64,000 nt of DNA from sequence record LR756502.1; one strand, given 5' to 3'. The translations under genes and the position numbers were made by a program. Shown piece after piece: positions 930 through 54,338 of the stretch (its first letter is position 1; every line of letters starts with the position of its first letter). The notes under the pieces are model-generated. The model was not told the origin of the DNA. It made no database searches and worked only from the letters and a program-made list of their open reading frames with translations.

Positions 930-1087
930 ATGAGAACAATTAACAAACATAAACATTTTAGTAAATTGAATAAGTGGTTTAGTAACCATCGATTCGAAGC
1001 TAAAGCGTTTTGCTAAATTGTTAATAAACATAAAGGCATAAACTTACTTGAACTCTCGAATTGAAAAATTCGAGAGTTTTTTATTTT
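930..1087 (+). promoter_or_regulatory. Attenuator 1: leader MRTINKHKHFSKLNKWFSNHRFEAKAFC (930-1016) + terminator (1051-1087)
   Basis: His x3, Phe x4, Trp, Lys x5; CGATTCGA (990-997) can pair with terminator arm TCGAATTG (1056-1063); followed by His/Phe/Trp/Lys tRNAs and trpS. Confidence 0.8.
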
Positions 1088-1096
1088 AAATTATAT

Positions 1097-1170
1097 GGTG
1101 GTTATCGTCCAAAGGAAGGATGTGTCCCTGTGAAGGACAAGATGTGGTATCGAGATCCATTAACCACCCA
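1097..1170 (+). tRNA. tRNA-His(GUG), encoded G-1
   Basis: GGTGGTTA/TAACCACC acceptor, TGTCC-CTGTGAA-GGACA. Confidence 0.85.
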
Positions 1171-1173
1171 AAA

Positions 1174-1246
1174 GGATCCTAAGCTAACTTGGTAGAAGCG
1201 TATGCCTGAAGAGCATGAGGATTTGGTTCGAAACCAAAAGGATCCA
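1174..1246 (+). tRNA. tRNA-Phe(GAA)
   Basis: GGATCCT/AGGATCC, TATGC-CTGAAGA-GCATG. Confidence 0.85.
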
Positions 1247-1256
1247 CAAAAAATAT

Positions 1257-1333
1257 GGTGATTGTAGCTCAATTGGTAGAGCGCTTGACTGTGAGTCAAG
1301 AGGTAGTGGGATCGAATCCCACCTTTCACCCCA
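1257..1333 (+). tRNA. tRNA-His(GUG)
   Basis: CTTGA-CTGTGAG-TCAAG, encoded CCA. Confidence 0.85.
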
Positions 1334-1335
1334 AT

Positions 1336-1407
1336 GGAGGATTAGCTGAGATGGTTTAGCGTCTGGTTGAAGACCAGAAGACCTCGGTTCGATTCCGGGA
1401 TTCTCCA
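1336..1407 (+). tRNA. tRNA-Phe(GAA)
   Basis: TCTGG-TTGAAGA-CCAGA, GGAGGAT/ATTCTCC. Confidence 0.85.
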
Positions 1408-1416
1408 CAAAAATAT

Positions 1417-1497
1417 ACACTCGCTCATTGGCGTGACCAGTCGGTTCCCCGATAAAGCGTAAGCGTGGTTAAGAGTTCGAATCTCTTCGGGTGTTCA
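1417..1497 (+). ncRNA. tRNA-like RNA with no assignable anticodon
   Basis: ACACTCG/CGGGTGT acceptor and AAGAG-TTCGAAT-CTCTT T-arm, but middle arm GTCGG-TTCC-CCGAT has a 4-nt loop. Confidence 0.55.
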
Positions 1498-1500
1498 AAT

Positions 1501-1571
1501 ACGTGATACTGGCAAGGTGTCGGTCAGGTCTCCAAAACCTCGATGGGTGGGTTCAATTCCTACATCACGTG
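1501..1571 (+). tRNA. tRNA-Trp(CCA)
   Basis: ACGTGAT/ATCACGT, AGGT-CTCCAAA-ACCT. Confidence 0.85.
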
Positions 1572-1589
1572 CTAAAAGAAAGAAAAGAA

Positions 1590-1647
1590 ATGAAAACAAA
1601 ACGAAAATATAAAAGATAACTGCTCACTGGATTTTCCATGGGCAGTA
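1590..1647 (+). promoter_or_regulatory. Lys-rich mini-ORF MKTKRKYKR (1590-1619) + hairpin, directly before three tRNA-Lys
   Basis: AAA at codons 2,4,6,8; hairpin ACTGCTCA..TGGA-TTT-TCCA..TGGGCAGT, no U-tract. Confidence 0.45.
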
Positions 1648-1660
1648 TAATATAACACAA

Positions 1661-1746
1661 GTGTCCGTGAGTGAATGGTTGAAACTACCAGTCTTTTAAA
1701 CTGGCTACCGAAAGGTACAATGTGGGTTCGAATCCCACCGGGCACA
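1661..1746 (+). tRNA. tRNA with Lys(UUU) anticodon and long variable arm
   Basis: CCAGT-CTTTTAA-ACTGG; V-arm TACC-GAAA-GGTA; A73. Confidence 0.85.
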
Positions 1747-1758
1747 CAAACATACAAT

Positions 1759-1847
1759 GTTTCTGTCGCTCAGCGGTCGAGAGCATCGGTCTTTTAAACC
1801 GAAGGATTTATATCCCATCGTGAGTTCAAATCTCACCAGGAACACCA
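1759..1847 (+). tRNA. tRNA with Lys(UUU) anticodon and long variable arm
   Basis: TCGGT-CTTTTAA-ACCGA; V-arm GGAT-TTAT-ATCC; encoded CCA. Confidence 0.85.
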
Positions 1848-1848
1848 A

Positions 1849-1929
1849 GGATCTGTCGCTTAGCGGCTATAGCAACTGGCTCTTAACCAGTCGAGAAATC
1901 AACCGTGGGTTCGAGTCCCACCAGATCCA
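1849..1929 (+). tRNA. tRNA-Lys(CUU) with 13-nt variable region
   Basis: ACTGG-CTCTTAA-CCAGT; variable CGAGAAATCAACC. Confidence 0.85.
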
Positions 1930-1933
1930 CAAA

Positions 1934-2260
1934 ATGATACTATACAGACCAGTAAACGGAAAGGAATTGGATTTGATAATCGAAAGTGGATATACAAAAT
2001 TCCCACCAAGATTACCAGAGCAACCAATCTTTTATCCAGTATTAAATAAAGAATATGCAATACAAATAACTAAGGAGTGGAACATTCCAGCCTATGGAGT
2101 TGGATATGTAACTGAATTTGATGTAGATGATACTTATATCAGTCAGTTTACAACTAAAAATGTAGGTGGTGAAATTCATAATGAACTATGGATACCATCT
2201 GAAAGATTGGAGGAGTTTAATAATAAAATTATAGGAAAAATTAGAATTATACAGATATGA
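1934..2260 (+). CDS. Conserved protein of the LYRPV..FPPRLPEQPIFYPV family (often labelled ADP-ribosylation/crystallin J1)
   Basis: True start is ATG 1934, after the tRNAs; motif recognised from memory. Confidence 0.55.
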   Translation: MILYRPVNGKELDLIIESGYTKFPPRLPEQPIFYPVLNKEYAIQITKEWNIPAYGVGYVTEFDVDDTYISQFTTKNVGGEIHNELWIPSERLEEFNNKIIGKIRIIQI

Positions 2261-2976
2261 AATATCTCATAGGGATCCAGCCAACTGGAAGAATACATAT
2301 TGGTAACTATTTAGGTTGCTTAAAGAAAGGACTCGATTTACAGAATCAAGGACATGAAGTTACATTTTTAATTGCTAACTACCATTCACTAACAACTGAT
2401 AGTTATACTGATGAAACTGAAAAGGAATTAGTTAGACTTGGATGTAAGAACATTAAAAGACAGACTCCTGAATATACTGAGTTGTTTTTCAAACTATGTT
2501 GCAAGATAAATTTAGCAACATTACAGAAGATGCCTCAATTCAAGGATAAGAAAGGGACAGTTGATTTTGATATGGGTATTTTATTATATCCTGTTCTAAT
2601 GACAGCTGATATTATGATGAATGATCCAGATGTTGTTATAGTTGGTAAAGACCAAGTTCCACATTTAGATTTATGTAATGATATTTCTAAAAGAGTTGGT
2701 GGTAAAGAATATAAGTATGAATTTGGTGATGTTGATAAGATAATGTCACTTAGTGATCCTACTAAGAAAATGTCTAAATCATTAGGTGAGAAACATGTTC
2801 TTTATCTATTTGATGAGGATTATAAAAAGAAAATTAGAAGTGCCAATGCGAATGAAGAGGGTTTAGAAAATCTTAAGAAACTTGGAAGAAGTCTCGGAGT
2901 CGATATTGATAAGTGTGTATTGAATGTTGAGTTGAAAGATGCAATTGCTCAGAAGATGGAAGAAATTTTCATTTAG
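2257..2976 (+). CDS. trpS: Tryptophanyl-tRNA synthetase, shortened (239 aa)
   Basis: GIQPTG..HIGNY, YPVLMTADI, VGKDQ.PHL, KMSKS. Confidence 0.9.
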   Translation: MKYLIGIQPTGRIHIGNYLGCLKKGLDLQNQGHEVTFLIANYHSLTTDSYTDETEKELVRLGCKNIKRQTPEYTELFFKLCCKINLATLQKMPQFKDKKGTVDFDMGILLYPVLMTADIMMNDPDVVIVGKDQVPHLDLCNDISKRVGGKEYKYEFGDVDKIMSLSDPTKKMSKSLGEKHVLYLFDEDYKKKIRSANANEEGLENLKKLGRSLGVDIDKCVLNVELKDAIAQKMEEIFI

Positions 2977-3108: not shown

Positions 3109-3369
3109 ATGAAAAACGTATTTAATTTTGCAGACTTTGTTAACGAGGAACTAAAAAAACTCCCAACTACTTATAACTTCAAGAGTGAATCTGAAGATAA
3201 AAAACATGATAAACTAGCTTCTAAAAAGAAGGAAGGTCATATCTGGAAAAAGACTGTTAGTAAACACGGTAAAGAATCTAAGACTGAGAATTTTTCTTGT
3301 GAGTGTGGATATAAGAAGAAGGTTGAAAATGATGAGAATAAGAATGTTACAATTACTTATTCAAAATAA
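3109..3369 (+). CDS. Hypothetical protein with N-terminal tag variant (MKNVFNFADFVNEE)
   Basis: ORF behind TAATATATA. Confidence 0.6.
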   Translation: MKNVFNFADFVNEELKKLPTTYNFKSESEDKKHDKLASKKKEGHIWKKTVSKHGKESKTENFSCECGYKKKVENDENKNVTITYSK

Positions 3370-3393: not shown

Positions 3394-3401
3394 TATATTT
3401 G
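3394..3401 (+). promoter_or_regulatory. Bacteroidota sigma-A -7 element TAnnTTTG (representative copy)
   Basis: Also at 5603, 16798, 20897, 36526, 49897, 54202, 58860, 61975 and others, often with TTTG about 20 nt upstream. Confidence 0.8.
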
Positions 3402-3419: not shown

Positions 3420-3555
3420 ATGAAAACAACTATTAAAAATACAAGTTCACGTAGTCGCTCGAGTAAATCGGGTGAGGTTCGACTGTATTCATAATAGTTA
3501 GTATAAACATATTGTGTAAACCCTCGAACTTAACCGTTTGAGGGTTTTTTGTTTT
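3420..3555 (+). promoter_or_regulatory. Attenuator 2: leader MKTTIKNTSSRSRSSKSGEVRLYS (3420-3494) + terminator (3518-3555)
   Basis: Ser x7, Arg x3; GGTTCGA (3476-3482) pairs with TCGAACT (3524-3530); followed by Arg/Ser tRNAs. Confidence 0.8.
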
Positions 3556-3560: not shown

Positions 3561-3632
3561 GGCTTCATCGTCCAATGGATAGGACACTCCGCTACGAACG
3601 GAGAAATTTGGGTTCGAGTCCCTATGAGACTA
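3561..3632 (+). tRNA. tRNA-Arg(ACG)
   Basis: CTCCG-CTACGAA-CGGAG. Confidence 0.85.
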
Positions 3633-3708
3633 CAAATGAATATCACAGGAGAGTGTATTAAGTTGCAACCCGCGTAAATTGTGAAGGACAATCTGTGATA
3701 TTCAAATT

Positions 3709-3792
3709 GGAAGAGTAATTAAGCTGGCGCTTGACCTAGTCTTGAAAACTAGCGGTACCTACGGGTATGGGGATCGATACCTCACTCTTCCA
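3709..3792 (+). tRNA. tRNA-Ser(UGA)
   Basis: CTAGT-CTTGAAA-ACTAG, V-arm. Confidence 0.85.
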
Positions 3793-3797
3793 CAAAT

Positions 3798-3884
3798 GGA
3801 AGGTTGGCAGAGTCCGGCTTATTGCACCAGTCTTGAAAACTGGAGGTCCTTCGGGATCCGTGAGTTCGAATCTCACATCTTCCT
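3798..3884 (+). tRNA. tRNA-Ser(UGA)
   Basis: CCAGT-CTTGAAA-ACTGG, V-arm. Confidence 0.9.
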
Positions 3885-3889
3885 CTAAT

Positions 3890-3975
3890 GGAGATCAATC
3901 TACTCTGGTGAGTAGCGGCGTTTGCTAAACGTTCGGCACGTTCAATCGTGTGGGGTTCAATTCCTCTGGTCTCCT
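3890..3975 (+). tRNA. tRNA-Ser(GCU)
   Basis: GGCGT-TTGCTAA-ACGTT, V-arm. Confidence 0.85.
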
Positions 3976-4030
3976 CAATCATTAGTGGGGAAAGGACATC
4001 TTTAAGGGGTGAGGTGGGTTCCCTTAAATT

Positions 4031-4115
4031 GGAAGATAAGCTAATCGGGTGATTAGCCACGCTTGGAAAGCGTTGGGTACGTTCAATCGTATGGGCTTCG
4101 ATGCTCTATCTTCCT
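4031..4115 (+). tRNA. tRNA-Ser(GGA)
   Basis: ACGC-TTGGAAA-GCGT, V-arm. Confidence 0.85.
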
Positions 4116-4120
4116 CATAA

Positions 4121-4192
4121 GGATCCATCGTATAATGGATATTACTACCGTCTTCGAAACGGTAAATCGCAGTCCGACTCTGCGTGGGTCCT
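4121..4192 (+). tRNA. tRNA-Arg(UCG)
   Basis: ACCGT-CTTCGAA-ACGGT. Confidence 0.85.
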
Positions 4193-4225
4193 CTTTTAAA
4201 TTATTTTTAGTATATTTGTATTTAA

Positions 4226-4528
4226 ATGGAAAATATTGTAATAGGCATATGTCCTATTTGTGAAAGAGAAATGTGGAAAGATAAGTTTGTCAATAGACAT
4301 CACTTTCTTCCAAAATCGAAAGGTGGGAGAGAAACAGAGTGGCTTCATAAAATTTGTCATAGGAAAATTCATTCTATTTTTACAAACACAGAGTTAGCAA
4401 AAGAGTATAATAACCCGGAGGTTGTAAGGGCTCATCCAGAGATTGATAGATTTATTAAATGGATATCTAAAAAGGATCCAGATTTCTATGATGGAAATAC
4501 AACACATAATAAAAAAGGAAGACTATGA
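4226..4528 (+). CDS. HNH endonuclease family protein
   Basis: CPIC..NRHHFLPKSKGG..LHKICHRKIH. Confidence 0.8.
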   Translation: MENIVIGICPICEREMWKDKFVNRHHFLPKSKGGRETEWLHKICHRKIHSIFTNTELAKEYNNPEVVRAHPEIDRFIKWISKKDPDFYDGNTTHNKKGRL

Positions 4529-5595: not shown

Positions 5596-5657
5596 TTATC
5601 CGTATATTTGTAAAACAGAAATTAAACTATTTAATAATATAATATATAATAATCGAA

Positions 5658-5765
5658 ATGAAAACTTTGCACACATATAAAAACGTGATTGACTGGATGT
5701 AAATATCCCGGCTACATAATTATATGTATTCCCAGTCAATAAAAATTGACTGGGATTTTTATTTT
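5658..5765 (+). promoter_or_regulatory. Attenuator 3: leader MKTLHTYKNVIDWM (5658-5702) + terminator (5729-5765)
   Basis: ATTGACTGG (5688-5696) is the exact complement of terminator arm CCAGTCAAT (5732-5740); operon contains RNA ligases and HisRS core. Confidence 0.65.
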
Positions 5766-5789: not shown

Positions 5790-5987
5790 ATGAAAACTAA
5801 AGATATAGCTTGGTATGACCAGAAGTTGGAGAGTATCAAGAAAAGAAAAAGAAAGGTCTACCTTATTGATGATTCTAAAACTAGAAAGAGAATTAAGGCA
5901 GATCTTAAAAGAGAACAGCGTGGTGCTAAGCGAAGCGTTCGTAACTCTCTAAAAGAGTGGATTAAAAAAGAAATTAATACAGATTAA
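5790..5987 (+). CDS. Small very basic hypothetical protein
   Basis: Lys/Arg-rich 65 aa ORF. Confidence 0.6.
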   Translation: MKTKDIAWYDQKLESIKKRKRKVYLIDDSKTRKRIKADLKREQRGAKRSVRNSLKEWIKKEINTD

Positions 5988-5988
5988 G

Positions 5989-6186
5989 ATGGCAACACAT
6001 ACAAATACACTAACCTCACATCATGGTGAGAGTAGAACATCTAGAGCAGATAAAATGTCTGGTTGGATATCAGAATATAAAAGAATATTTGGTAAATCGG
6101 GAACATCGATGAAAACTGCCAAGACAATAAGTAATAGGAAAAGAAGAATGTTCTTAAAGAACAAAAAAAATTGGACAAAATTATGA
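5989..6186 (+). CDS. Small basic hypothetical protein
   Basis: 65 aa ORF, overlaps next gene. Confidence 0.55.
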   Translation: MATHTNTLTSHHGESRTSRADKMSGWISEYKRIFGKSGTSMKTAKTISNRKRRMFLKNKKNWTKL

Positions 6187-6836
6187 AATCATACCCGAGT
6201 ATAGACTATTTTGATAAAGGACTGTTTGGTGATACTGTTTGGGTATTCGACAAATTGGATGGATCAAATCTTAGAATGGAGTGGAACCGTAAGAGAGGGT
6301 GGTATAAATTTGGAACAAAGTCTGTAATGATTGATGTTAGTAATCCAGATTTTGGAGAAGCTATTCCTATATTTATGGAGAAATATTCCGATGATTTAGA
6401 GAGAGTATTTAAGAAAGAATATTCCAATGTTGAAAGCATTGTTGTTTTCTGTGAGTTTGTTGGAGACAACTCATTCGCTGGTCAGCATCTTGCTTCAGAT
6501 AAGAAGGATGTAGTTCTTTTTGATGTTAATCTTTATAAGAAAGGATTTATACATCCAAAAGATTTCCTCGATAACTTCGGACATCTCCATATACCCAAGT
6601 TGGTATATAAAGGAGAATATAATGACGACCTTATCAAAGATGTTAGAGATAATATCTGGGGTCTAAAAGAAGGTGTAATATGTAAAGGAGTTAGAAAAAC
6701 AAAAGGTGACCACATAGTCTGGATGACTAAGATTAAAACCATCGAATGGTTAAATAAAGTAAAAGAAAAATATGGAGAGAAGGCTCTCCTTGAAGAATTA
6801 AACAATAATAAAAAACTATTAAATTATGGAAATTAA
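6171..6836 (+). CDS. RNA ligase-like nucleotidyltransferase (Rnl2-type core)
   Basis: Motif I KLDGSN, CEFVG, LFDV, EGVICK, KIK. Confidence 0.75.
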   Translation: MDKIMKSYPSIDYFDKGLFGDTVWVFDKLDGSNLRMEWNRKRGWYKFGTKSVMIDVSNPDFGEAIPIFMEKYSDDLERVFKKEYSNVESIVVFCEFVGDNSFAGQHLASDKKDVVLFDVNLYKKGFIHPKDFLDNFGHLHIPKLVYKGEYNDDLIKDVRDNIWGLKEGVICKGVRKTKGDHIVWMTKIKTIEWLNKVKEKYGEKALLEELNNNKKLLNYGN

Positions 6837-7458
6837 ATTAGAATCAACGTATAAAGGAACTCGAATATTATTCGCTGAATCAGCTAAAAGAAAAAGAGAT
6901 ATATTAAATAAGATGATTGAAGTTCTTGAGTCCTATGGGTATCAGGAAATTATGATTCCTATTATTCAAAAACAAGAAACATTCCAATCAAAGGTGGGTG
7001 CTGAAAATCAAAACATGATGTTTAACTTCAAAGATAGAGGTGATCGTGATTTATGTTTATCCCCAGAGTATACCGCAATCGTTCAACAACTTGCTAAAGA
7101 GAAATTCAAATTCACAAACAATGTGAAGATGTTTTATATCGGTGAGTGTTTTAGAGGAGAAAATACACAAGCTGGAAGATGGAGACAATTTACTCAGTTT
7201 GGTGTTGAGATTATAAACCCAACAAAGGACTATTCTGATGAGATGGTTGAAATTGCTGGAAAACTAATTGAGTTAGTTACAAAAAATTATGAGACAAACC
7301 TAGATGCAACTCGTGGACTTGACTACTATAAAGGTGGTAAAGGATTTGAAATAGCTTGTCCAGAATTAGGTTCATCAAAGCAAGTTTGTGGCGGTGGTAC
7401 TTATGAAGGTGGTTTGGGATTCGCAGTGGGTGTTGATAGACTACTATTATGCAAATAA
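6826..7458 (+). CDS. hisS: Histidyl-tRNA synthetase catalytic core only (210 aa)
   Basis: LSPEYTA, motif 2 FRGENTQAGRWRQFTQFGVE, GLDYY, motif 3 GFAVGVDRL; no anticodon-binding domain. Confidence 0.8.
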   Translation: MEIKLESTYKGTRILFAESAKRKRDILNKMIEVLESYGYQEIMIPIIQKQETFQSKVGAENQNMMFNFKDRGDRDLCLSPEYTAIVQQLAKEKFKFTNNVKMFYIGECFRGENTQAGRWRQFTQFGVEIINPTKDYSDEMVEIAGKLIELVTKNYETNLDATRGLDYYKGGKGFEIACPELGSSKQVCGGGTYEGGLGFAVGVDRLLLCK

Positions 7459-7721
7459 GAGAAATAAAAATATCACTCCAGCAAAAGGACGGATATCTCT
7501 ACTTCAGAACTGGATCAGATCCAGTTGAAGTTGAAGTGAAGATAGAATTTGGCACTGCTAAAAATCTGAGGGATTTTTTACATAGTGGTGAAAAACTATG
7601 CAGTGTAGATAAAAATCTTGTGAAGATAATAAAAATTAATAAAATGAGACATACCTCTGTTGAGGCAACAATACAAAAAATTACTCTAAGAGAGTATAAT
7701 TTAGAAAGGTTACTATTATGA
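7449..7721 (+). CDS. Hypothetical protein with C-terminal tag (LREYNLERLLL)
   Basis: ORF track. Confidence 0.55.
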   Translation: MQIREIKISLQQKDGYLYFRTGSDPVEVEVKIEFGTAKNLRDFLHSGEKLCSVDKNLVKIIKINKMRHTSVEATIQKITLREYNLERLLL

Positions 7722-16909: not shown

Positions 16910-16947
16910 CAAAAGAATAAAAACAAAATATTAATAAATTAGAAATA

Positions 16948-46410: not shown

Positions 46411-46564
46411 CCCTCGGATAAAAATTCGAGGGTTTTTGTTTAAAAGAATTAATATATAACCTATGAGACACATGAAAAAATTTAATGCCCTCGGATAAAA
46501 ATTCGAGGGTTTTTGTTTAAAAGAATTAATATATAACCTATGAGACACATGAAAAAATTTAATG
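46411..46564 (+). repeat. Perfect 77-bp tandem duplication (terminator + TAATATATA + MRHMKKFN start)
   Basis: 46411-46487 identical to 46488-46564. Confidence 0.9.
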
Positions 46565-49860: not shown

Positions 49861-49957
49861 AATTAAAATTAATTTGGTAAATTGAAAACTTCTTCCTATA
49901 TTTGTAATAGAATTAAAAATAACAAAAACACGCTTTAAAAAGCTGATATATACTAAA

Positions 49958-50119
49958 ATGAAAAACTTAATCTTAAATATCGCAATTCAAGTACAACGTC
50001 AAGTTGTTGTCGATCAGGATCAACCGGATACGACTGAGGCTAATTGCGATTTTATAAGAGAGTAAAATAATACTTGAATTATACAAACCCAGTTAGTCTA
50101 TGATTAACTGGGTTTTTTT
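49958..50119 (+). promoter_or_regulatory. Attenuator 7: leader MKNLILNIAIQVQRQVVVDQDQPDTTEANCDL (49958-50056) + terminator (50085-50119)
   Basis: Asp x4, Gln x5, Pro; GGCTAATTG (50038-50046) pairs with CAGTTAGTC (50090-50098); followed by Pro/Asp tRNAs. Confidence 0.75.
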
Positions 50120-50130: not shown

Positions 50131-50203
50131 CGCGAAGTGACTGAGGTTTAAGCGAGAGTGGTCTGGAGCCATTTTTTAGTCAGTTCGATTCTGACCTTCG
50201 CGA
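50131..50203 (+). tRNA. Atypical tRNA-Pro(UGG), C33/A37
   Basis: C1:G72, A73; AGTGG-TCTGGAG-CCATT. Confidence 0.65.
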
Positions 50204-50211
50204 CAAAATTA

Positions 50212-50286
50212 CGGAAATTGGGCTAATTGGTAAGCCGCTTCATTTGGGATGAAGACATCGTGTGGGTTCAAGTCCCGCATTTCCGA
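50212..50286 (+). tRNA. tRNA-Pro(UGG)
   Basis: CTTCA-TTTGGGA-TGAAG. Confidence 0.9.
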
Positions 50287-50291
50287 CAAAT

Positions 50292-50366
50292 GGCTCGTGG
50301 TACTGCACGGTGTGGTAACCTGTTTGTCAAACAGGATACAGATGGGATCATTACCCATACGAGTCA
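50292..50366 (+). tRNA. tRNA-Asp(GUC)
   Basis: CCTGT-TTGTCAA-ACAGG; unusual D-arm, A73. Confidence 0.8.
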
Positions 50367-50371
50367 CAAAA

Positions 50372-50443
50372 GGTCTATTAGTGAAATGGCTATCATCCCA
50401 CACTGTCACTGTGGAGTAGACGGATCGAAACCGTCATAGACCG
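50372..50443 (+). tRNA. tRNA-Asp(GUC)
   Basis: CCACA-CTGTCAC-TGTGG, G73. Confidence 0.9.
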
Positions 50444-50508
50444 CAAGAGATTAATTTGGAATCTTAAACCTTGCAAAAGCGAGGACTGGTAATATTTTAA
50501 TCTCATAT

Positions 50509-50583
50509 GGTTCGTGGAACTGCACGGTGTGGTTACTTGATTGTCAATCAGGACACAGACGGGATCGTTACCCGTACGAATCA
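50509..50583 (+). tRNA. tRNA-Asp(GUC), paralogue of 50292
   Basis: CTTGA-TTGTCAA-TCAGG. Confidence 0.8.
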
Positions 50584-50588
50584 CAAAA

Positions 50589-50662
50589 CGAGAAGTGACT
50601 AAGGCTTTAAGCACGGGTGATCAGGAGTCATCTGTTAGTGGGTTCAATTCCAACCTTCTCGA
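50589..50662 (+). tRNA. Atypical tRNA-Pro(AGG), C33/A37
   Basis: C1:G72, A73; GGTGA-TCAGGAG-TCATC. Confidence 0.65.
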
Positions 50663-50670
50663 CAAATATA

Positions 50671-50744
50671 AAGATGTTGATCGTCTAATGAAAGGTTCCC
50701 CTACGGAGGGGAGGGTTTGGGTTTGATTCCCAAGAGACGTTTTT
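50671..50744 (+). pseudogene. Degenerate tRNA-Arg(ACG)
   Basis: TCCC-CTACGGA-GGGA and T-arm; weak acceptor. Confidence 0.5.
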
Positions 50745-50752
50745 ATGTTAAC

Positions 50753-50822
50753 GGTGCTGTCGTCTAATGATAGGATGCTCCCATTGGAGGGAGTGATGTA
50801 GGTTTGATTCCTAACTGTACCG
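50753..50822 (+). pseudogene. tRNA-like gene with 6-nt anticodon loop (ATTGGA)
   Basis: CTCCC-ATTGGA-GGGAG; D- and T-arms present. Confidence 0.5.
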
Positions 50823-50833
50823 CAAAAATAATA

Positions 50834-50902
50834 CGAGATGTAGCCTATTGGCATGAGGCACTAGTTTTGTGAACTAGACGAAGCAGGTTCCTGTCATCTC
50901 GA
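50834..50902 (+). pseudogene. Pro-type body with UGU anticodon and deleted T-loop
   Basis: CGAGATG/CATCTCG; CTAGT-TTTGTGA-ACTAG; GCAGG-TT-CCTGT. Confidence 0.55.
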
Positions 50903-50936: not shown

Positions 50937-51052
50937 ATGACAACTTCATTTCAGCAACAACAGCAACAACAAATTAATCGAACAGATTGATGTGGAATGA
51001 TATTGTTTAAATATTACACCCGTTAGTCTGAGGAGATTAACGGGTTTTTTAT
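50937..51052 (+). promoter_or_regulatory. Attenuator 8: poly-Gln leader MTTSFQQQQQQQINRTD (50937-50990) + terminator (51018-51052)
   Basis: 7 consecutive CAG/CAA codons; CAGATTGATG (50983-50992) pairs with CGTTAGTCTG (51021-51030); followed by 4 tRNA-Gln and glnS. Confidence 0.9.
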
Positions 51053-51123
51053 TGTCCGATAGTGTAGAGGTAACACAAGGGTCTTTGGTCCCCTTATCAC
51101 TGGTTCGATCCCAGTTCGGATAA
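51053..51123 (+). tRNA. tRNA-Gln(UUG)
   Basis: U1:A72; CTTTGGT loop. Confidence 0.85.
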
Positions 51124-51130
51124 CAAATAT

Positions 51131-51214
51131 TGCGGAATCCCATAATGGCATTGGTCCTGACTTTGAATCAGGTGGAATGAAAATTCTGTGTAGGTTCGAA
51201 TCCTACTTCCGCAT
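51131..51214 (+). tRNA. tRNA-Gln(UUG) with long variable arm
   Basis: CCTGA-CTTTGAA-TCAGG; V-arm GGAAT-GAAA-ATTCT. Confidence 0.85.
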
Positions 51215-51219
51215 CAAAT

Positions 51220-51292
51220 TCCTCTTTGGTCTAATGGCTAATGACGTGTCCCTTTGACGGATAAGGTGGTGGTTCGATTCCATCAAGAGGAA
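51220..51292 (+). tRNA. tRNA-Gln(UUG)
   Basis: TGTCC-CTTTGAC-GGATA. Confidence 0.85.
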
Positions 51293-51297
51293 CAAAA

Positions 51298-51369
51298 TGT
51301 CTTATAATATAATGGTTAGTATAACCGCCTCTGAAGCGGTTTGTCTTGGTTCGAGTCCAGGTGAGACAA
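51298..51369 (+). tRNA. tRNA-Gln(CUG)
   Basis: ACCGC-CTCTGAA-GCGGT. Confidence 0.9.
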
Positions 51370-51397
51370 CTAAAAATTAATTTAAACTAAAACAATT

Positions 51398-52999
51398 ATG
51401 AATTTCATTGAAGATAAAATAATAGAGAAAAATAACTTAGATAAACTAAAGTTAAGATTTCCACCAGAAAACTCAGGTTATATCCACCTGGGTCATGCCA
51501 AATCTATCTGTCTTAATTTTGGACTAGCATTAAAATATAACAGACCTTGTAATTTAAGGTTTGATGATACTAACCCATCCAATGAATCTGACGATTTCAC
51601 AAGATCAATAATTGAAGATATCAAATGGTTAGGATTCACACCATCTGAGACTCTATATACCTCTGATTATTTCTCTGAACTATACAACTATGCAATCATC
51701 CTAATTAGAAAAGGATTAGCTTACGTTGATGATTCAACATCAGAAGAAATTGCCTTATTAAAAGGAACACCAACATCTGTTGGTAAAGATTCTCCATATA
51801 AATCAAGAACTATCGAAGAGAACTTAGACTTATTCAATAGAATGAAATTAGGTGAATTCACAGAGGGTTCTAAAACACTTAGAGCAAACATTGATATGAC
51901 TTCATCTAATATGATATTGAGAGATCCTATCATATATAGAATGATTAATAAGACACACCACAATGTTGGTGATGCTTGGAAGATATATCCAATGTATGAT
52001 TTTGCACATCCATTGTCTGACTATATTGAAGGTATAACTGACTCTTTGTGTACTATGGAATTTGAGGTACATTTGCCTTTATATATGTGGGTATTGAAAA
52101 ATTGTGATTTAAAAAATTCTTTACCGGAAGAAACTGAGTTTGCTCGATTGAACATTGATTTTACAATAATGAGTAAGAGAAAACTAAAGAGATTAGTTGA
52201 AGAAGGATTTGTTTCTGGATGGGATGATCCAAGAATGCCTACTATCTCTGGATTAAGAAGAAGAGGATTTACACCAAAAAGTATTAGAGATTTTTGTGAA
52301 GAAATTTCTGTAACAAGAAGTAACTCTATAATTAGTCATAAAGTATTAGAAGAGTGTTTAAGAACAGATTTGAATAAGTCAGCTAATAGAATGATGGGTG
52401 TTATTGACCCTGTTAAATTGACTATTACTAATTGGGTTGGTGGTACTGAATGGGTTGAAATAGAGAATAACCCAGAAGATCCAAACGCTGGAACTAGATT
52501 GGTTCCTTTTACTGGAGTGTTGTGGATTGAGATAGAAGACTTTAGATTAGAAGCTGATAAGAAATTTCACAGATTAAAGTTGAATGAAGAAGTTAGATTA
52601 AAAGGTGGATACGTTGTTAAAGCAACCGATGTTGTTATGAATGGTGATGTTATATCTGAGATAAAATGTACATTCGATCCTAACTCTAAATCTGGAATGG
52701 TTTTAGATAGAAAGGTAAAAGGAGTAATTCACTGGGTATCTGTTGAACACGCTGTTAACTTAGATGTTAATGAGTATGATACTTTATTTACTGAATCTAA
52801 TCCTGATGATTTAGAAGATTTTACAACTTGTATTAATCCTAATTCTTTAATTGTGAATACAAAGGCTATGTTTGAACCACATATAATGGCACTTGAAGTT
52901 GGTGTTCCGGTTCAAATGATGAGAAAAGGATATTATTGTCTTGACAAGGATGGTGTTTTTAACAAGACCGTTTCATTGAAAGAAGGTTGGAAAGGATAA
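51398..52999 (+). CDS. glnS: Glutaminyl-tRNA synthetase
   Basis: RFPPENSGYIHLGHAK, LRFDDTNP, YPMYDFAH, SKRKL, GWDDPRMPTI.GLRRRG, VKGVIHWVS. Confidence 0.95.
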   Translation: MNFIEDKIIEKNNLDKLKLRFPPENSGYIHLGHAKSICLNFGLALKYNRPCNLRFDDTNPSNESDDFTRSIIEDIKWLGFTPSETLYTSDYFSELYNYAIILIRKGLAYVDDSTSEEIALLKGTPTSVGKDSPYKSRTIEENLDLFNRMKLGEFTEGSKTLRANIDMTSSNMILRDPIIYRMINKTHHNVGDAWKIYPMYDFAHPLSDYIEGITDSLCTMEFEVHLPLYMWVLKNCDLKNSLPEETEFARLNIDFTIMSKRKLKRLVEEGFVSGWDDPRMPTISGLRRRGFTPKSIRDFCEEISVTRSNSIISHKVLEECLRTDLNKSANRMMGVIDPVKLTITNWVGGTEWVEIENNPEDPNAGTRLVPFTGVLWIEIEDFRLEADKKFHRLKLNEEVRLKGGYVVKATDVVMNGDVISEIKCTFDPNSKSGMVLDRKVKGVIHWVSVEHAVNLDVNEYDTLFTESNPDDLEDFTTCINPNSLIVNTKAMFEPHIMALEVGVPVQMMRKGYYCLDKDGVFNKTVSLKEGWKG

Positions 53000-53030
53000 T
53001 TTTCCAACCTTTCTTTTTAATATATAACCT

Positions 53031-53552
53031 ATGAAACATTTAAAAATATTTGAAGATTTTGAATATAAATCAATAACACCTGATGAGTTAAAAGGCTTGG
53101 TTGTTAAAAGAATATATCATAGTAGTAACGGATCATCTATTGTTGAGACAGATAAAGGTATATTTGATGTTGGTTGCATGGGTGGTGCTATGATATCATT
53201 TGAAGGCAGTTTAAGTATTGAAGAGGTTGTAAATAGAACAATAATTGACGTTTTGATGGAAGAAGGATCGATAACTCTAGTATTTAGTGATGGTGAAATT
53301 TCTTTTGTAGATGATACTGGTGGTGAAGGAGTTTCAGCTGATTGGGTAAATGAATCTAATGATTCAAAAATTGAGGACATTGAATTAAAAATTAAAGATG
53401 CTGCTTATAGTTTGAAGACATTTGGGACTATGAATAAACAAGGAGCTTTTATAAATGGTGCTAAATGGGCTATTCACAATTTAACAGATGAAGAGATAAA
53501 ATATATGAGAGAGAGCTCAGATTCGGAAGATCATAGTTTCTTTGGACTTTAG
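53031..53552 (+). CDS. N-terminal-tag protein (MKHLKIFEDF)
   Basis: Behind TAATATATA. Confidence 0.65.
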   Translation: MKHLKIFEDFEYKSITPDELKGLVVKRIYHSSNGSSIVETDKGIFDVGCMGGAMISFEGSLSIEEVVNRTIIDVLMEEGSITLVFSDGEISFVDDTGGEGVSADWVNESNDSKIEDIELKIKDAAYSLKTFGTMNKQGAFINGAKWAIHNLTDEEIKYMRESSDSEDHSFFGL

Positions 53553-53567
53553 AAAATAAATTAGTAT

Positions 53568-53885
53568 ATGAAACATTTAAAAAAATTTAATGAGTCTGAA
53601 ACTTGGTCAAGTGGTATTTCACTTGATGATGTAATTGAGTTTATTCATCCTTCAAATCCTATGGATTCACAAGAGTACTATTATTATATATGGGCTGATG
53701 ATGAGGTTTACTATGAATTTGCAAAATTGAAGGTACGTGATTATATGGATGTGATTAATCGTACAGTTTTCAAAGAAGAATCAAATACAGCTAAAAAGTT
53801 TGGTTATGATTTTATTATGACTAATCAAGAAGAGATATTAGATAAGTGTGAGGAATATTTAATATCTGATGGAGTTAGAAAATAA
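53568..53885 (+). CDS. N-terminal-tag protein (MKHLKKFNES)
   Basis: Shared motif. Confidence 0.65.
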   Translation: MKHLKKFNESETWSSGISLDDVIEFIHPSNPMDSQEYYYYIWADDEVYYEFAKLKVRDYMDVINRTVFKEESNTAKKFGYDFIMTNQEEILDKCEEYLISDGVRK

Positions 53886-53894
53886 AATTAGTAT

Positions 53895-54161
53895 ATGAAA
53901 AATATTAAAACATTTGAATTATTTAGTGATTGGTTTAAGTCTAAGGAACAAAATGCTCGTGAGGAGATGTTTGGTACAAAAAACTTAGAAAAAAAATCAG
54001 AAGATGTTCAGAAACTAATAGATGAGATAATACTAAACCAAGGTACTAGTTTAGATCACAGAAATGATAGATTTAAAGTGTATAGTGACGTAGAGTTATC
54101 AAATATGTCCGATGATGAAATTACTAGTATTTGGCAGCAAATAACTGGGAATAGGTATTAG
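53895..54161 (+). CDS. N-terminal-tag protein (MKNIKTFELF)
   Basis: Shared motif. Confidence 0.6.
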   Translation: MKNIKTFELFSDWFKSKEQNAREEMFGTKNLEKKSEDVQKLIDEIILNQGTSLDHRNDRFKVYSDVELSNMSDDEITSIWQQITGNRY

Positions 54162-54213
54162 AAAAAAAATAAATAAATTAGAACAAATCAAAAAATTTAT
54201 ATATATTTGTAGA

Positions 54214-54338
54214 ATGAGAAAGATAATTAAATTAAAAGATGATCGTTATTTATGGACTGACTGCCTCGCAGATTAGTGATAGATAACTATTACCTATAAT
54301 CTTCAAACCCAGTCAGAAATGACTGGGTTTTTTATTTT
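54214..54338 (+). promoter_or_regulatory. Attenuator 9: leader MRKIIKLKDDRYLWTDCLAD (54214-54276) + terminator (54305-54338)
   Basis: Asp x4; CTGACTG (54257-54263) pairs with CAGTCAG (54310-54316); directly before aspS. Confidence 0.8.

Follow-up and report, generated by a model that had tools for sequence, protein, structure and literature searches.

The analysed window, a 64,000-nt stretch of LR756502.1 (a 642-kb “huge phage” with Flavobacteria-like hosts), contains nine elements of common layout, in which a short leader ORF is followed by an intrinsic terminator and then by tRNA or aminoacyl-tRNA synthetase (aaRS) genes (Table 1). A first-pass annotation, made from the sequence alone, had placed nine such leaders of 14–34 codons here; all (9/9) were present as ATG ORFs with the starts it gave, each with its terminator and cargo; leader 7 (49958-50065), however, has 35 codons. 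Across the nine elements, 22–36 nt separate the leader ORF from a hairpin of −12 to −16 kcal/mol that is followed by a run of 5–7 T, and the cargo begins 2–61 nt after the terminator; each element folds as an upstream hairpin plus terminator (whole-element z between −3.7 and −6.8). Most leaders have AAA, AGA or ACA as their second codon, and the sequence ahead of them is A-rich, as in real genes.

Promoters were assessed against the host-type Bacteroidota consensus TAnnTTTG. Only 6/9 leaders have such a promoter of their own, and the earlier claim of a promoter at every leader held in part and was an overstatement, since leaders 4, 5 and 8 (starting at 16948, 17656 and 50937) are internal to tRNA operons and have no host-type promoter of their own; leader 5 has a TTAATATATA box upstream despite its intra-operon position. 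An extended motif, AAATTTGGTnGA..TATnTTTGTA, is common to the boxes at 874, 16798, 29102, 49897 and 61975. The promoter-motif scan returned no TAnnTTTG box between terminator and cargo in any of the nine elements, and the first box after cargo 3 is at 8459. The tRNA-Met(CAT) gene is transcribed ahead of the first gate of the attenuator 4/5 operon and is therefore ungated. The box at 54202-54209 is a possible promoter of leader 9, of uncertain role; with only 4 nt between them, the mRNA would have almost no 5′ leader, or none at all.

On the + strand of the window, 9 of the 14 strong terminators carry a leader-type ORF. Neither a leader-ORF attenuator element nor a tRNA was found in the 100 kb of this genome that flank the window, where seven strong terminators (counting both strands) gave one chance ORF–terminator combination, and none on the + strand. 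An attenuator element was likewise absent from all 64 Flavobacteriia-type (host-type) glnS loci examined. Within cargo 1, a mini-ORF and hairpin lie directly 5′ of the three tRNA-Lys genes and might, on weak evidence, be a tenth, weaker attenuator overlooked in the first-pass annotation; one relative (L021) has a full Lys leader and terminator before its Lys tRNAs.

Table 1 Features of the nine elements (region 2, antiterminator strand; z, whole element)
Feature	Coordinates	Strand	Details
Promoter −7 box, attenuator 1	874-881	+	TATATTTG; TTTG ~20 nt upstream; TAnnTTTG consensus
Leader ORF 1, His/Phe/Lys/Trp	930-1016	+	MRTINKHKHFSKLNKWFSNHRFEAKAFC; 28 codons; region 2, 988-998
Terminator 1	1053-1082	+	10-bp stem, T6; z = −6.8
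Cargo 1, first part	1098-2976	+	tRNA His (1098-1168, GTG read by eye), Phe, His, Phe, one unassigned, Trp, Lys x3
Cargo 1 ORFs	within 1098-2976	+	108-aa ORF; TrpRS-like ORF 2257-2976
Possible tenth element	1590-1646	+	mini-ORF 1590-1619 (MKTKRKYKR); hairpin 1619-1646, no U-tract
Promoter −7 box, attenuator 2	3394-3401	+	TAnnTTTG scan
Leader ORF 2, Ser/Arg	3420-3494	+	MKTTIKNTSSRSRSSKSGEVRLYS; 24 codons; region 2, 3474-3483
Terminator 2	3521-3550	+	z = −5.5
Cargo 2	3561-4193	+	tRNA Arg(ACG), Ser(TGA) x2, Ser(GCT), Ser(GGA), Arg(TCG)
Promoter −7 box, attenuator 3	5603-5610	+	TAnnTTTG scan
Leader ORF 3, one His codon	5658-5702	+	MKTLHTYKNVIDWM; 14 codons; region 2, 5687-5697, 10 bp complementary to terminator 5′ arm
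Terminator 3	5730-5760	+	z = −4.9
Cargo 3, first part	5790-8431	+	two 65-aa ORFs; RNA ligase 6183-6836
Cargo 3, rest		+	HisRS-like 210-aa ORF 6826-7458; 90-aa ORF; RNA ligase 7718-8431
Promoter −7 box, attenuators 4 and 5	16798-16805	+	TAnnTTTG scan
tRNA-Met(CAT)	16838-16910	+	
Leader ORF 4, Glu/Tyr	16948-17040	+	MNRFTNIETIGYTGYEGAYSELLVRPLSML; 30 codons; region 2, 17014-17024
Terminator 4	17068-17099	+	z = −6.5
Cargo 4	17161-17597	+	tRNA Glu, Tyr, Glu, Tyr, Glu
Leader ORF 5, Ile/Gly/Ala	17656-17739	+	MKNLHNISVGVIAIGAGSVCLWLNYVS; 27 codons; region 2, 17716-17725
Terminator 5	17766-17792	+	z = −4.7
Cargo 5, first part	17799-19227	+	tRNA Ile(TAT), Gly(TCC) x2, GIY-YIG ORF, Gly(GCC)
Cargo 5, rest		+	Gly-like tRNA with 6-nt loop, tRNA-like element, Ala(TGC) x2
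Promoter −7 box, attenuator 6	29102-29109	+	TAnnTTTG scan
Leader ORF 6, Asn/Leu/Thr/Val plus Cys, Ile, Arg, Met	29158-29262	+	MKTMNLNMNLNTLTVVNNTLCIRPCEGFDLFNDL; 34 codons; region 2, 29224-29238
Terminator 6	29296-29322	+	z = −3.7
Cargo 6, first part	29345-32017	+	67-aa ORF; tRNA Asn x2, Arg(TCT), Leu, Val, Ile(GAT)
Cargo 6, middle		+	probable Cys(GCA), Thr, Val, Leu(CAA), Thr, Leu x3
Cargo 6, end		+	HNH ORF, Ile(TAT), Thr(GGT), Leu(AAG), Met, Leu(CAA)
Promoter −7 box, attenuators 7 and 8	49897-49904	+	TAnnTTTG scan
Leader ORF 7, Asp/Pro, five Gln codons	49958-50065	+	MKNLILNIAIQVQRQVVVDQDQPDTTEANCDFIRE; region 2, 50036-50049
Terminator 7	50088-50119	+	z = −5.4
Cargo 7	50131-50902	+	tRNA Pro x2, Asp x3, Pro(AGG), three atypical tRNAs
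Leader ORF 8, seven consecutive Gln	50937-50990	+	MTTSFQQQQQQQINRTD; 17 codons; region 2, 50982-50996, spans stop codon
Terminator 8	51019-51050	+	z = −5.6
Cargo 8	51053-52999	+	tRNA Gln(TTG) x3, Gln(CTG), GlnRS 51398-52999
Promoter-like box	54202-54209	+	overlaps TATATATA motif
Leader ORF 9, four Asp	54214-54276	+	MRKIIKLKDDRYLWTDCLAD; 20 codons; region 2, 54256-54264
Terminator 9	54308-54333	+	z = −5.2
Cargo 9	54363-55640	+	non-discriminating (archaeal-type) AspRS

Leader codons and downstream cargo

A shuffled leader–cluster comparison, suggested in the first-pass annotation, placed the true leader–cargo pairing best of 5040 permutations, in support of the composition match asserted there. 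Per-leader binomial tests on the codons decoded by cargo tRNAs gave the lowest P-value for leader 8 (3e-8), with 13/27 codons decoded for leader 1 (P = 5e-5), 10/23 for leader 2 (P = 7e-6) and 25/33 for leader 6 (P = 7e-5). The Asp/Pro leader of the window (leader 7) is not enriched when taken alone (5/34, P = 0.32), whereas its relatives are; seven of these carry NPQPQ..DQDP, and Gln is enriched across the family (25/243 vs 2.2%, P = 4e-10). Glu and Tyr make up 24% in leaders of the leader 4 type (background 10%, P = 3e-6), relatives of which read SYESYYEEG, SYYEGYEYE, SYEAYYYEEG and GYEAYEY. Leader 3, the one outside the eight matches of the annotation, is not without cargo: a HisRS-like gene and two RNA ligases belong to its operon. 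LHTYK is retained in three relatives (L019, L025 and L132), and others carry His-rich leaders before the same HisRS-like gene (HHH.H in L122 and HFHFHF in L020, where a PheS-like, or PheS-related, gene is also present). The GlnRS of cargo 8 matches TIGR00440 (618 bits) and the AspRS of cargo 9 matches NF003483 (469 bits, cut-off 353).

The codon–anticodon match is shown at the level of single codons. With Arg(ACG/TCG/GCG) in the cargo, Arg was encoded by CGN every time (11/11), and with Arg(TCT) by AGA (7/7; Fisher, P = 3e-5); the CGT, CGC and CGA of leader 2 fit its own Arg tRNAs (ACG/TCG). Ile codons were ATA in 25/35 cases with cargo Ile(TAT) and ATT in 6/6 with cargo Ile(GAT); the three Ile codons of leader 5, whose cargo has Ile(TAT), are all ATA. 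Across eight phages, leaders of the leader 5 type used GCG for 18/25 Ala codons compared with 3% in the genome; GGC (2.4%) and CGN (15%) are also rare in the phage's own genes. It remains possible that the rare G/C-rich control codons (GCG, GGC) partly reflect RNA structure needs rather than tRNA sensing. Furthermore, homologous leaders are not independent of one another, and the very small P-values obtained from pooled counts therefore overstate the evidence; family-level signs and covariation form a safer basis.

Further homologues of the attenuators were supplied by freshwater metagenome contigs. All homologues retain the layout, together with ATG, frame and stop codon, and >20 contigs show co-variation of leader and cargo; both the conserved leader composition and the covariation that the annotation had proposed seeking in related phages were thus found. 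Replacement cargoes include Ser, Arg and Trp tRNAs behind a Ser/Arg/Trp leader (L022), IleRS behind IIII and AsnRS plus an ArgRS-like gene behind NNRNR (both LR745206), and a ValRS-like gene behind VVVV (L005), while Val codons were gained together with a Val tRNA in L124. Composition and RNA pairing are conserved, and peptide sequence is poorly conserved beyond control residues and region 2 codons. HKHFSK.NKWF of leader 1 is kept in L018 and L020, relatives of leader 6 occur in L025 and L136, and in eight of eight leader 8 homologues the CAA/CAG run is read in the ATG frame as Gln, not Asn/Thr.

Antiterminator pairing and predicted folds

In 9/9 window elements, 7–12 nt in the 3′ part of the leader (region 2) are complementary to the 5′ arm of the terminator (region 3), so that the 7–13 nt noted earlier held, and the pairing is cognate-specific. 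Among 43 attenuators from the window, a sister phage and IMG/VR contigs, which were used for all structure tests, the cognate region 2:region 3 duplex was stronger than non-cognate ones in 42 (mean z −1.8), with a negative sign in all 16 families; for leader 3 it reaches −13.5 kcal/mol (z = −4.5). Covariation of the two regions is shown by compensatory changes within families (GGTTCGA/TCGAACT vs GATTCGA/TCGAATC; AGATTGA/TCAATCT vs GGTTCCGG/CCTGGAAC) and by the homologue of leader 9 in L013 (MTIKRIKLADDCLTCLTVTD), in which region 2 and terminator covary.

The proposed folding with and without a ribosome was run in three states (no ribosome, footprint on the control codons, footprint on the stop codon), and in these model predictions the fold depends on ribosome position. 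Mean antiterminator gain was −3.4 kcal/mol without a ribosome, −8.3 on control codons and −2.2 on the stop codon, the stalled state beating the stop state by >2 kcal/mol in 38/43 attenuators. Control codons were enriched at permissive A-site positions (OR 4.1, P = 3e-25); the predicted permissive zone spans codons H8–W16 in leader 1 and peaks on the DD pair in leader 9, and the Asp/Pro codons of leader 7 lie at its edge. Several elements are predicted to form the antiterminator even without any ribosome, so untranslated transcripts need not terminate.

An attenuation model and its alternatives

Very likely, these elements attenuate transcription in the classical ribosome-mediated (leader-peptide) manner ahead of phage tRNA arrays and aaRS genes, a reading that rests on sequence and comparison without transcript, ribosome or reporter data, the phage being uncultured. 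The first-pass annotation had offered the same interpretation, and every part of it testable in sequence was borne out. Briefly, transcription would start at a host-type promoter or arrive from an upstream tRNA cluster (the transcribing RNA polymerase is not established), and the short leader would be translated. With control-codon tRNAs plentiful and charged, the ribosome would pass over region 2 to the stop codon, and the terminator hairpin (3:4) would form and halt RNA polymerase before the cargo. With such a tRNA scarce, the ribosome would stall on the control codons, covering region 1 and leaving region 2 free to pair with region 3, and read-through would yield the very tRNAs and synthetase that serve these codons. 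Since the control codons are read by tRNAs of the cargo, every unit would regulate the supply of a few isoacceptors by negative feedback. A read-through response to charged-tRNA supply in infected cells is inferred, read-through itself being untested, and so is the cause of any shortage, which may lie in the decay of host tRNAs or their cleavage by defence nucleases, in the demand that AT-rich phage mRNAs create, or in a limited amino-acid supply. Single elements have weak points, namely the lone His codon of leader 3, the putatively leaderless mRNA of leader 9 and the composition of the window's Asp/Pro leader.

The best-surviving alternative keeps the attenuation and takes the signal to be ordinary supply and demand or amino-acid limitation, anticodon nucleases being uninvolved; the loops would then hold each phage tRNA or synthetase at the level that AT-rich phage mRNAs need. 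The feedback topology follows directly from cargo tRNAs reading the control codons, co-regulation of synthetases with tRNAs is sensible for charging capacity, and the window has no recognisable anti-nuclease factor except RNA ligases. Against it, the control codons GCG, GGC and CGN are rare in phage genes, so phage codon demand alone cannot explain the choice of many of them; one gate (leader 3) has two RNA ligases behind it; and published work shows phage tRNAs able to counter tRNA-cleaving defences (PMC10264068, PMC11555353, PMC11464382). We consider this alternative a serious one, at somewhat less than even odds. The anticodon-nuclease trigger proposed by the annotation itself remains an inference, its sole link being those two ligase genes.

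A translation-independent RNA switch, in which uncharged tRNA pairs with leader codon runs in the manner of a T-box specifier and stabilises the antiterminator, is very improbable. Codon runs complementary to cargo anticodons are present, and, as T-boxes are not known in Bacteroidota, an analogue is conceivable; however, at a threshold as lax as E ≤ 0.5 the elements matched neither a T-box nor any other Rfam family, no conserved tRNA-acceptor-binding motif was seen, ATG, frame and stop are conserved with gene-like A-rich upstream regions and second codons, and the fold depends on ribosome position. Equally hard to sustain is the view that the leaders encode functional micropeptides, or that terminated leader transcripts are small RNAs, with the cargo link secondary: some bacteria do have terminated attenuator RNAs that work in trans (rnTrpL/peTrpL, PMC7968998), but what is conserved here is composition and RNA pairing, not peptide sequence. 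Chance ORFs ahead of ordinary terminators or insulators that part upstream genes from tRNA arrays are all but excluded: ATGs abound in AT-rich DNA and terminators before tRNA genes are not unusual per se, but the comparative data contradict this reading (composition conserved despite sequence divergence, leader–cargo co-variation), as do the 1/5040 permutation result, the lack of promoters after the terminators and the empty + strand of the flanks.

Leader-peptide attenuation thus remains the preferred reading. It resembles the classical bacterial systems in principle and differs in its cargo of phage tRNA and aaRS genes; the annotation knew of no earlier description for phage tRNA arrays, and none of attenuators gating such cargo was found in the literature searched. 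If it is correct, each phage tRNA/aaRS group would be expressed only when ribosomes lack exactly those tRNAs.

Layout of the leader–terminator units and their cargo

The first-pass annotation had proposed nine amino-acid-specific ribosome attenuators gating phage tRNA and aminoacyl-tRNA synthetase (aaRS) genes, each with its own promoter. All nine leader ORFs were recovered (14–35 codons; named here by their start), and the promoter claim held in part, with a host-type promoter of its own found at six leaders. Past every leader stop codon, at a distance of 22–36 nt, lies a hairpin of −12 to −16 kcal/mol followed by a run of 5–7 T, and a further 2–61 nt separate this run from the cargo. No TAnnTTTG promoter box was found in any of the nine terminator–cargo gaps, and a phage-specific promoter of unknown sequence is not excluded; as far as this search reaches, an intrinsic terminator stands between leader and cargo without a subsequent promoter. 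Sequence analysis likewise supports that the regulated genes are preceded by a small ORF, complete from start to stop codon and in a translatable context: sequences upstream are A-rich, codon 2 is AAA, AGA or ACA in 37 of the 43 leaders analyzed, matching genuine genes in the window, and the reading frame is conserved among homologues.

Such leader–terminator units account for 9 of the 14 strong plus-strand terminators of the window, the remainder being ordinary gene ends (e.g., after GluRS, a Csp-like ORF and an 898-aa gene). As control DNA we used the 50 kb on each side of the window in LR756502.1 itself; these flanks hold no tRNA genes, seven strong terminators (both strands summed) and one chance ORF–terminator pair, on the minus strand. 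Compared to dinucleotide shuffles, the nine elements fold with z-scores of −3.7 to −6.8, and the predicted ground state of all nine is the terminator plus an upstream hairpin that contains the control codons and region 2 (the antiterminator strand in the 3′ part of the leader).

Leaders 16948 and 50937 are preceded by tRNA genes and have no host-type box, and are therefore read as second gates inside an operon. The only box upstream of leader 17656 is TTAATATATA, a motif present at 17 sites in the window versus 1.6 expected, mostly 5–25 nt before ATG starts on either strand and including three leaders; it may be a phage-specific promoter or initiation signal. A tRNA-Met gene lies between a promoter and the first gate of its operon and is therefore ungated.

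Cargo genes comprise ~60 tRNA genes, all on the plus strand and grouped by amino acid, as called by ARAGORN (default and ps90), Rfam hits and manual reading; calls at very low ARAGORN thresholds were mostly noise and were discarded.

Positions of leaders, cargo and neighbouring features in the window
Feature	Position	Strand	Description
Leader 930	930	+	Cargo: tRNA His, Phe, His, Phe, Trp, Lys x3; TrpRS-like ORF
Leader 3420	3420	+	Cargo: tRNA Arg(ACG), Ser(TGA) x2, Ser(GCT), Ser(GGA), Arg(TCG)
Leader 5658	5658	+	Cargo: two RNA ligases, HisRS-like ORF
Leader 16948	16948	+	Cargo: tRNA Glu, Tyr, Glu, Tyr, Glu
Leader 17656	17656	+	Cargo: tRNA Ile(TAT), Gly x3-4, Ala x2
Leader 29158	29158	+	Cargo: tRNA Asn x2, Arg(TCT), Leu, Val, Ile(GAT), probable Cys, Thr, Val, Leu, more tRNAs
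Leader 49958	49958	+	Cargo: tRNA Pro, Pro, Asp x3, Pro
Leader 50937	50937	+	Cargo: tRNA Gln x4, GlnRS
Leader 54214	54214	+	Cargo: non-discriminating AspRS (NCBIfam 469 bits vs cut-off 353)
TrpRS-like ORF	2257-2976		239 aa, truncated; HIGN and KMSKS motifs present, anticodon-binding part missing
HisRS-like ORF	6826-7458		210 aa, truncated catalytic fragment, kept in relatives
RNA ligase family ORFs	6183-6836, 7718-8431		In the operon behind leader 5658
Homing-endonuclease-like ORFs	4226-4528, 18121-18804, 30960-31394		HNH, GIY-YIG and HNH, respectively; in or beside tRNA arrays
Promoter	16798		Upstream of tRNA-Met
tRNA-Met	16838-16910	+	Before the first gate
TTAATATATA sites (examples)	913, 3095, 11491, 17624, 27986, 29140, 46526, 53017	+	Motif count
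TTAATATATA sites (examples)	15906, 24263, 40493	-	Motif count
CHU_C-domain protein	43688-46384		898 aa; CHU_C/type IX secretion sorting domain
Identical terminator hairpins	46411-46432, 46488-46509		77 nt apart, past the CHU_C-domain gene
Promoter-like box	61975		Upstream of the GOLLD/tRNA region
GOLLD RNA and tRNA	62685-63174		Rfam RF02032, 275 bits, full length; atypical tRNA 10 nt on
tRNA-like genes, 6-nt anticodon loop	18899-18971, 50753-50823, 62082-62155, 63101-63174	+	E.g., TTCCAT, ATTGGA
Long tRNAs (Lys, Glu, Gln, Thr)	1661-1747, 1759-1847, 17161-17246, 51131-51215, 30558-30638	+	81-89 nt, extra-long variable regions
tRNA-like elements	18978-19062, 29725-29800		Apparently without D-arm; loops CTTATAA, CTGATAA; common block GTAGCGGTnnTTGnAAACGTGGGTTCAAATCCC
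Rfam tRNA hit	16572-16674		103 nt, large insertion, anticodon unreadable
tRNA-like sequence	1409-1500		Between tRNA-Phe and tRNA-Trp, anticodon unreadable
Structured spacer	17873-17966		G+C-rich, possible Gly-rich mini-ORF MSGKGTHGGSTAPSAPI just before tRNA-Gly; no terminator
Structured spacer	3634-3708		12-bp long-range hairpin between tRNA-Arg and tRNA-Ser; no terminator

Several cargo genes and their neighbours are atypical. Charging of tRNA has not been established for either truncated synthetase-like ORF; the RNA ligases are consistent with tRNA repair, and the GIY-YIG ORF is similar to Seg-like endonucleases from Vibrio phages. The tRNA following GOLLD was given a 2-nt "tt" anticodon by ARAGORN, i.e., a 6-nt loop, and a second such tRNA lies ~600 nt upstream; of the four tRNA-like genes with this loop, two resemble tRNAs for the amino acid of their own cluster (Gly; Pro or Gln). 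Variable regions as long as those of the Lys, Glu, Gln and Thr tRNAs are unusual outside class II. The elements apparently lacking a D-arm were not called by any tRNA finder at normal thresholds; a 33-nt stretch is identical in LR745206, the sister phage genome.

Codon content, pairing and predicted folding of the leaders

We scored each leader–cluster pair by the fraction of leader codons decoded by the cluster's anticodons minus genome background. The first-pass annotation had held that leader composition matches the downstream cargo and had suggested a comparison with shuffled pairs; this match held, the true assignment being the single best of 5040 permutations (7 leaders x 7 clusters). 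Cargo tRNAs decode 13 of 27 codons in leader 930, 10 of 23 in leader 3420, 25 of 33 in leader 29158 and 7 of 16 in leader 50937 (P-values 7e-5 to 3e-8). Leaders 17656 (P = 0.02) and 16948 (P = 0.07) showed weaker enrichment, and the window copy of leader 49958 showed none (P = 0.32). At the family level, cargo codons made up 35% of Gln leaders (background 2.2%), 42% of Ile/Gly/Ala leaders (19%) and 24% of Glu/Tyr leaders (10%). Control codons are contiguous and mid-leader in each case; the clustering of cargo-related codons expected of an attenuator is present, though weakly for leaders 49958 and 5658 in their window copies.

Codon choice also followed the cargo anticodons. Arg codons were CGN in 11/11 cases with Arg(ACG/TCG/GCG) cargo and AGA in 7/7 with Arg(TCT) cargo (P = 3e-5, Fisher test), AGA being 77% of Arg codons in phage genes. 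Ile was encoded by ATA in 25 of 35 cases in Ile/Gly/Ala leaders, with Ile(TAT) as cargo, and by ATT in 6/6 in Asn/Leu leaders, with Ile(GAT) as cargo. Ala codons of the Ile/Gly/Ala leaders were GCA or GCG, which the cargo tRNA-Ala(TGC) reads, in 24 of 25 cases, GCG alone making up 18 of the 25 versus 3% genome-wide. Because homologous leaders were pooled, these counts are not independent.

To describe pairing, we denote the 5′ arm of the terminator as region 3, so that 2:3 is the antiterminator and 3:4 the terminator. Because MAFFT aligned the Gln family with its terminator arms out of register, pairing was judged by comparing cognate with non-cognate duplex energies: for 43 attenuators in 16 families, the leader 3′ part plus spacer was hybridized in silico with every terminator's 5′ arm. 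The cognate duplex was stronger than those with unrelated arms in 42 of 43 attenuators (mean z −1.8), a preference seen in every one of the 16 families, and 2:3 duplexes of 7–12 bp are present in all nine window elements. Furthermore, region 2 and the terminator arm change together inside families. The Ser/Arg pair is GGTTCGA:TCGAACT in the window, GATTCGA:TCGAATC in LR745206 and GAACCAGG:CCTGGTTC in contig L022; the Gln pair is AGATTGA:TCAATCT or TTAGTCT in most phages and GGTTCCGG:CCTGGAAC in contig L006; the aspS pair is CTGACTG:CAGTCAG versus GTCTAACTG:CAGTTAGAC; and the His/Phe/Lys/Trp family has three differing pairs located at the same leader codons. By cognate duplex energies and compensatory changes, an antiterminator pairing that excludes the terminator is supported.

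Ribosome positions were modelled by imposing a 30-nt footprint on each transcript, which was folded as far as the terminator loop. The mean energy gain from engaging the terminator 5′ arm was −3.4 kcal/mol without a ribosome, −8.3 kcal/mol with the A site on control codons and −2.2 kcal/mol with the ribosome at the stop codon, and the stalled state was better than the stop state by >2 kcal/mol in 38 of 43 attenuators. The footprint check proposed in the first-pass annotation, that the antiterminator be favoured by a ribosome on the control codons and not by one on the stop codon, thus held. Scanning the A site along each leader placed the permissive zone on the control codons (in the window, HFSKLNKW, SSRSR, the Gln run and the DD pair), which were enriched at permissive positions (odds ratio 4.1); the exception was the window Asp/Pro leader, whose permissive zone covers a Gln-rich stretch upstream of DQDQPD. 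A protector 1:2 pairing overlapping the control codons was also obtained, in silico only, and the modelled folds are predicted to follow the classical 1:2, 2:3 and 3:4 logic.

Gln codons are strongly enriched in the Asp/Pro leader family (25/243, or 10%, versus 2.2% background; P = 4e-10), the Gln gate lies downstream of the Asp/Pro gate, and in contig L010 the first cargo of the Asp/Pro gate is tRNA-Gln; for these reasons, the Asp/Pro gate may respond to Gln as well. Sequence evidence thus supports nested gating for this pair, the first gate sensing, besides its own cargo, that of the gate behind it. It was rejected for the Glu/Tyr gate upstream of the Ile/Gly/Ala gate, as Ile/Gly/Ala codons there are at background (20% versus 19%).

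Relatives and reach of the system

The window corresponds to bases 372001–436000 of LR756502.1 (100% identity), the 642,428-bp genome of an uncultured phage that is among the four largest of Al-Shayeb et al. 2020, was placed in the "Mahaphage" clade and is predicted to infect Bacteroidetes (PMC7162821). The window has a G+C content of 33%, many genes with a strong upstream match to the promoter consensus of Bacteroidota (TTTG ... TAnnTTTG), a CHU_C/type IX secretion sorting domain protein, and a GlnRS whose nearest cellular sequences are from Flavobacterium, Chryseobacterium and relatives (51–54% identity).

Homologous units were found in LR745206 (634,780 bp), 15 IMG/VR contigs and ~10 freshwater metagenome contigs. 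Among these, nucleotide and peptide sequences have diverged, composition and layout are retained, and the leader changes along with the cargo. An IMG/VR search by anchor proteins beside the Glu/Tyr, Ile/Gly/Ala and Asn/Leu clusters gave no relatives, its one match being too distant for use; homologues of these families came from LR745206 and a terminator-sequence scan of metagenomes. A tRNA-Thr anticodon-arm pattern was discarded, matching mostly unrelated giant-virus or other contigs; its sole true relative, L113, begins past the leader.

Leaders and cargo in related phages (L numbers denote contigs)
Source	Leader	Cargo
Gln leaders	MTTTQQIQQQQINQTD, MNNLVQQVQQQQINLMIDWTRIG, MVNITINIQQQQQQQTLNKGSGIALS, others	tRNA-Gln arrays; CAA/CAG run always in Gln frame
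Asp/Pro leaders	..NPQPQ..DQDP..	
Glu/Tyr leaders	..SYYEGYEYE..	
Ile/Gly/Ala leaders	..IAIIGGGAGAG..	
L124	Ile/Gly/Ala leader with added Val codons	Added tRNA-Val
L022	MKVLTTYRWSWRSSSSSSRNSEPGHILS	Ser, Ser, Arg(TCT) x2, Trp x2
L021	MKTVNKNKKNKRVSLIR	Lys tRNAs
LR745206	MNFNTIIIIRYSIPWSIPIG	IleRS
LR745206	MKTMTINNRNRLTDII	AsnRS, then ArgRS-like ORF
L005	MKHINSNNVVVVNRNPVC	ValRS-like ORF
L020	MKTLNINTHFHFHFENLELGVH	HisRS-like and PheS-related ORFs
L122	MKNITNIITHHHSVHLG	HisRS-like ORF

Since relatives carry His-rich leaders before the HisRS-like gene that is also among the cargo of leader 5658, this leader, with one His codon, is assigned to the His-type family; its window copy has a degenerate control region and its own specificity is unresolved. 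Contig L020 (IMGVR_UViG_3300049793_000366) also encodes, within its His/Lys/Trp/Phe cluster, a tRNA at 3235–3306 with the ARAGORN anticodon TTA, a possible ochre suppressor.

The elements are absent from distant phage GlnRS/AspRS relatives (L009, L011, L014–L017), and the system is therefore restricted to one huge-phage subclade. Acquisition from a host together with the synthetase gene was ruled out, as none of 64 Flavobacteriia-type glnS loci has a leader plus terminator upstream; the elements were therefore not simply acquired along with the gene.

Known attenuators and the physiological reading

No element (0/9) matched the Rfam leader families (His_leader, Leu_leader, Thr_leader, Trp_leader and others), T-box or riboswitch families at the gathering score or E<=0.5; judged by sequence alone, the elements resemble the leader families in working and are not homologous members. 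With the classical proteobacterial attenuators (trpL, hisL, leuL, thrL, ilvL, pheL) and the general attenuation model (PMC1183508) they share a short control-codon-rich leader, 1:2/2:3/3:4 pairing and an intrinsic terminator. Classical attenuators, however, gate biosynthetic enzymes, whereas the phage cargo is tRNA genes and synthetases; most phage leaders would sense two to eight amino acids together; control codons follow the cargo anticodons, giving a feedback loop on tRNA itself; and the elements occur in a phage, successively within one operon, without sequence or Rfam relationship. Synthetase genes under leader-peptide attenuation are known from pheM-pheST in E. coli, and a His leader peptide precedes hisS paralogues or hisZ in bacilli (Naville & Gautheret 2010, PMC2965389). 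The Asp–AspRS and Gln–GlnRS units of the window and the Ile, Asn/Arg, Val and His/Phe units of relatives are of this type, an aaRS(-like) gene gated by a cognate-codon-rich leader, but form a set in one phage genome with tRNA genes mostly as first or sole cargo. T-box riboswitches offer a functional analogy, sensing a specific tRNA state and antiterminating translation-supply genes, but bind tRNA directly, without ribosome or ORF.

Phage tRNA arrays have been discussed as supplements or counter-defence (PMC10264068, PMC11555353, PMC11464382), and the huge-phage source paper mentions tRNAs, as many as 15 synthetases and the ligation of tRNAs that have been cleaved (PMC7162821). Large phage tRNA sets with RNA ligases nearby are the common feature; the relevant parts of these papers describe no per-amino-acid transcriptional gating, and neither "attenuat" nor "leader" occurs in PMC7162821, which released this genome. 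Among open-access papers and bioRxiv only, we found no report of tRNA genes or phage tRNA arrays under leader-peptide control. The mechanism, itself an inference, would be classical; the novelty lies in the cargo, the closed codon–anticodon feedback, the multi-amino-acid leaders and the phage setting, as well as ~ten units in one genome with near-complete coverage of the code.

The evidence is wholly computational: response to tRNA supply, leader translation, terminator efficiency and the polymerase are inferred or undetermined. Since the cargo tRNAs decode the control codons, the units should, by inference, close as tRNAs accumulate and reopen upon their loss. Depletion might arise from cleavage of host tRNA by defence nucleases, from host tRNA decay in a long infection, or from demand. 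Simple codon demand is disfavoured because the preferred control codons are rare in the phage's own genes; rare control codons, reminiscent of the leu leader, could alternatively reflect sensitivity tuning or RNA-structure needs. The anticodon-nuclease trigger suggested in the first-pass annotation remains an inference, one consistent with the pair of RNA ligases downstream of gate 5658 and with published phage tRNA roles.

A bolder reading joins these elements: phage tRNAs would repress their own synthesis through leader decoding, and ~ten independent isoacceptor sensors spanning nearly all amino acids would fire selectively upon destruction of particular tRNAs by the host or the phage (e.g., through anticodon-nuclease defence), replacing the lost species together with the matching synthetase or RNA-repair enzymes. 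As a joint claim, we judge it slightly more apt to fail than to hold. If true, it would be the first ribosome-mediated attenuation of tRNA genes within the literature searched, and a built-in damage sensor in the phage–host contest over tRNAs.

The elements would be compact natural sensors of single tRNA pools, usable as reporters of tRNA depletion or charging, and the leader–cargo rule offers a route to the specificity of odd tRNAs and truncated synthetase-like genes in these phages. Leader-peptide attenuation would extend to tRNA genes, to phages and to Bacteroidota hosts, where such control is little documented. Control of phage tRNA genes has been little studied, and the purpose of large tRNA sets is debated between codon supplementation and counter-defence, a debate that becomes testable by asking which stress opens which gate. 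A codon-specific attenuator set would show a huge phage gauging translation capacity codon by codon and supplying tRNAs and synthetases on demand.
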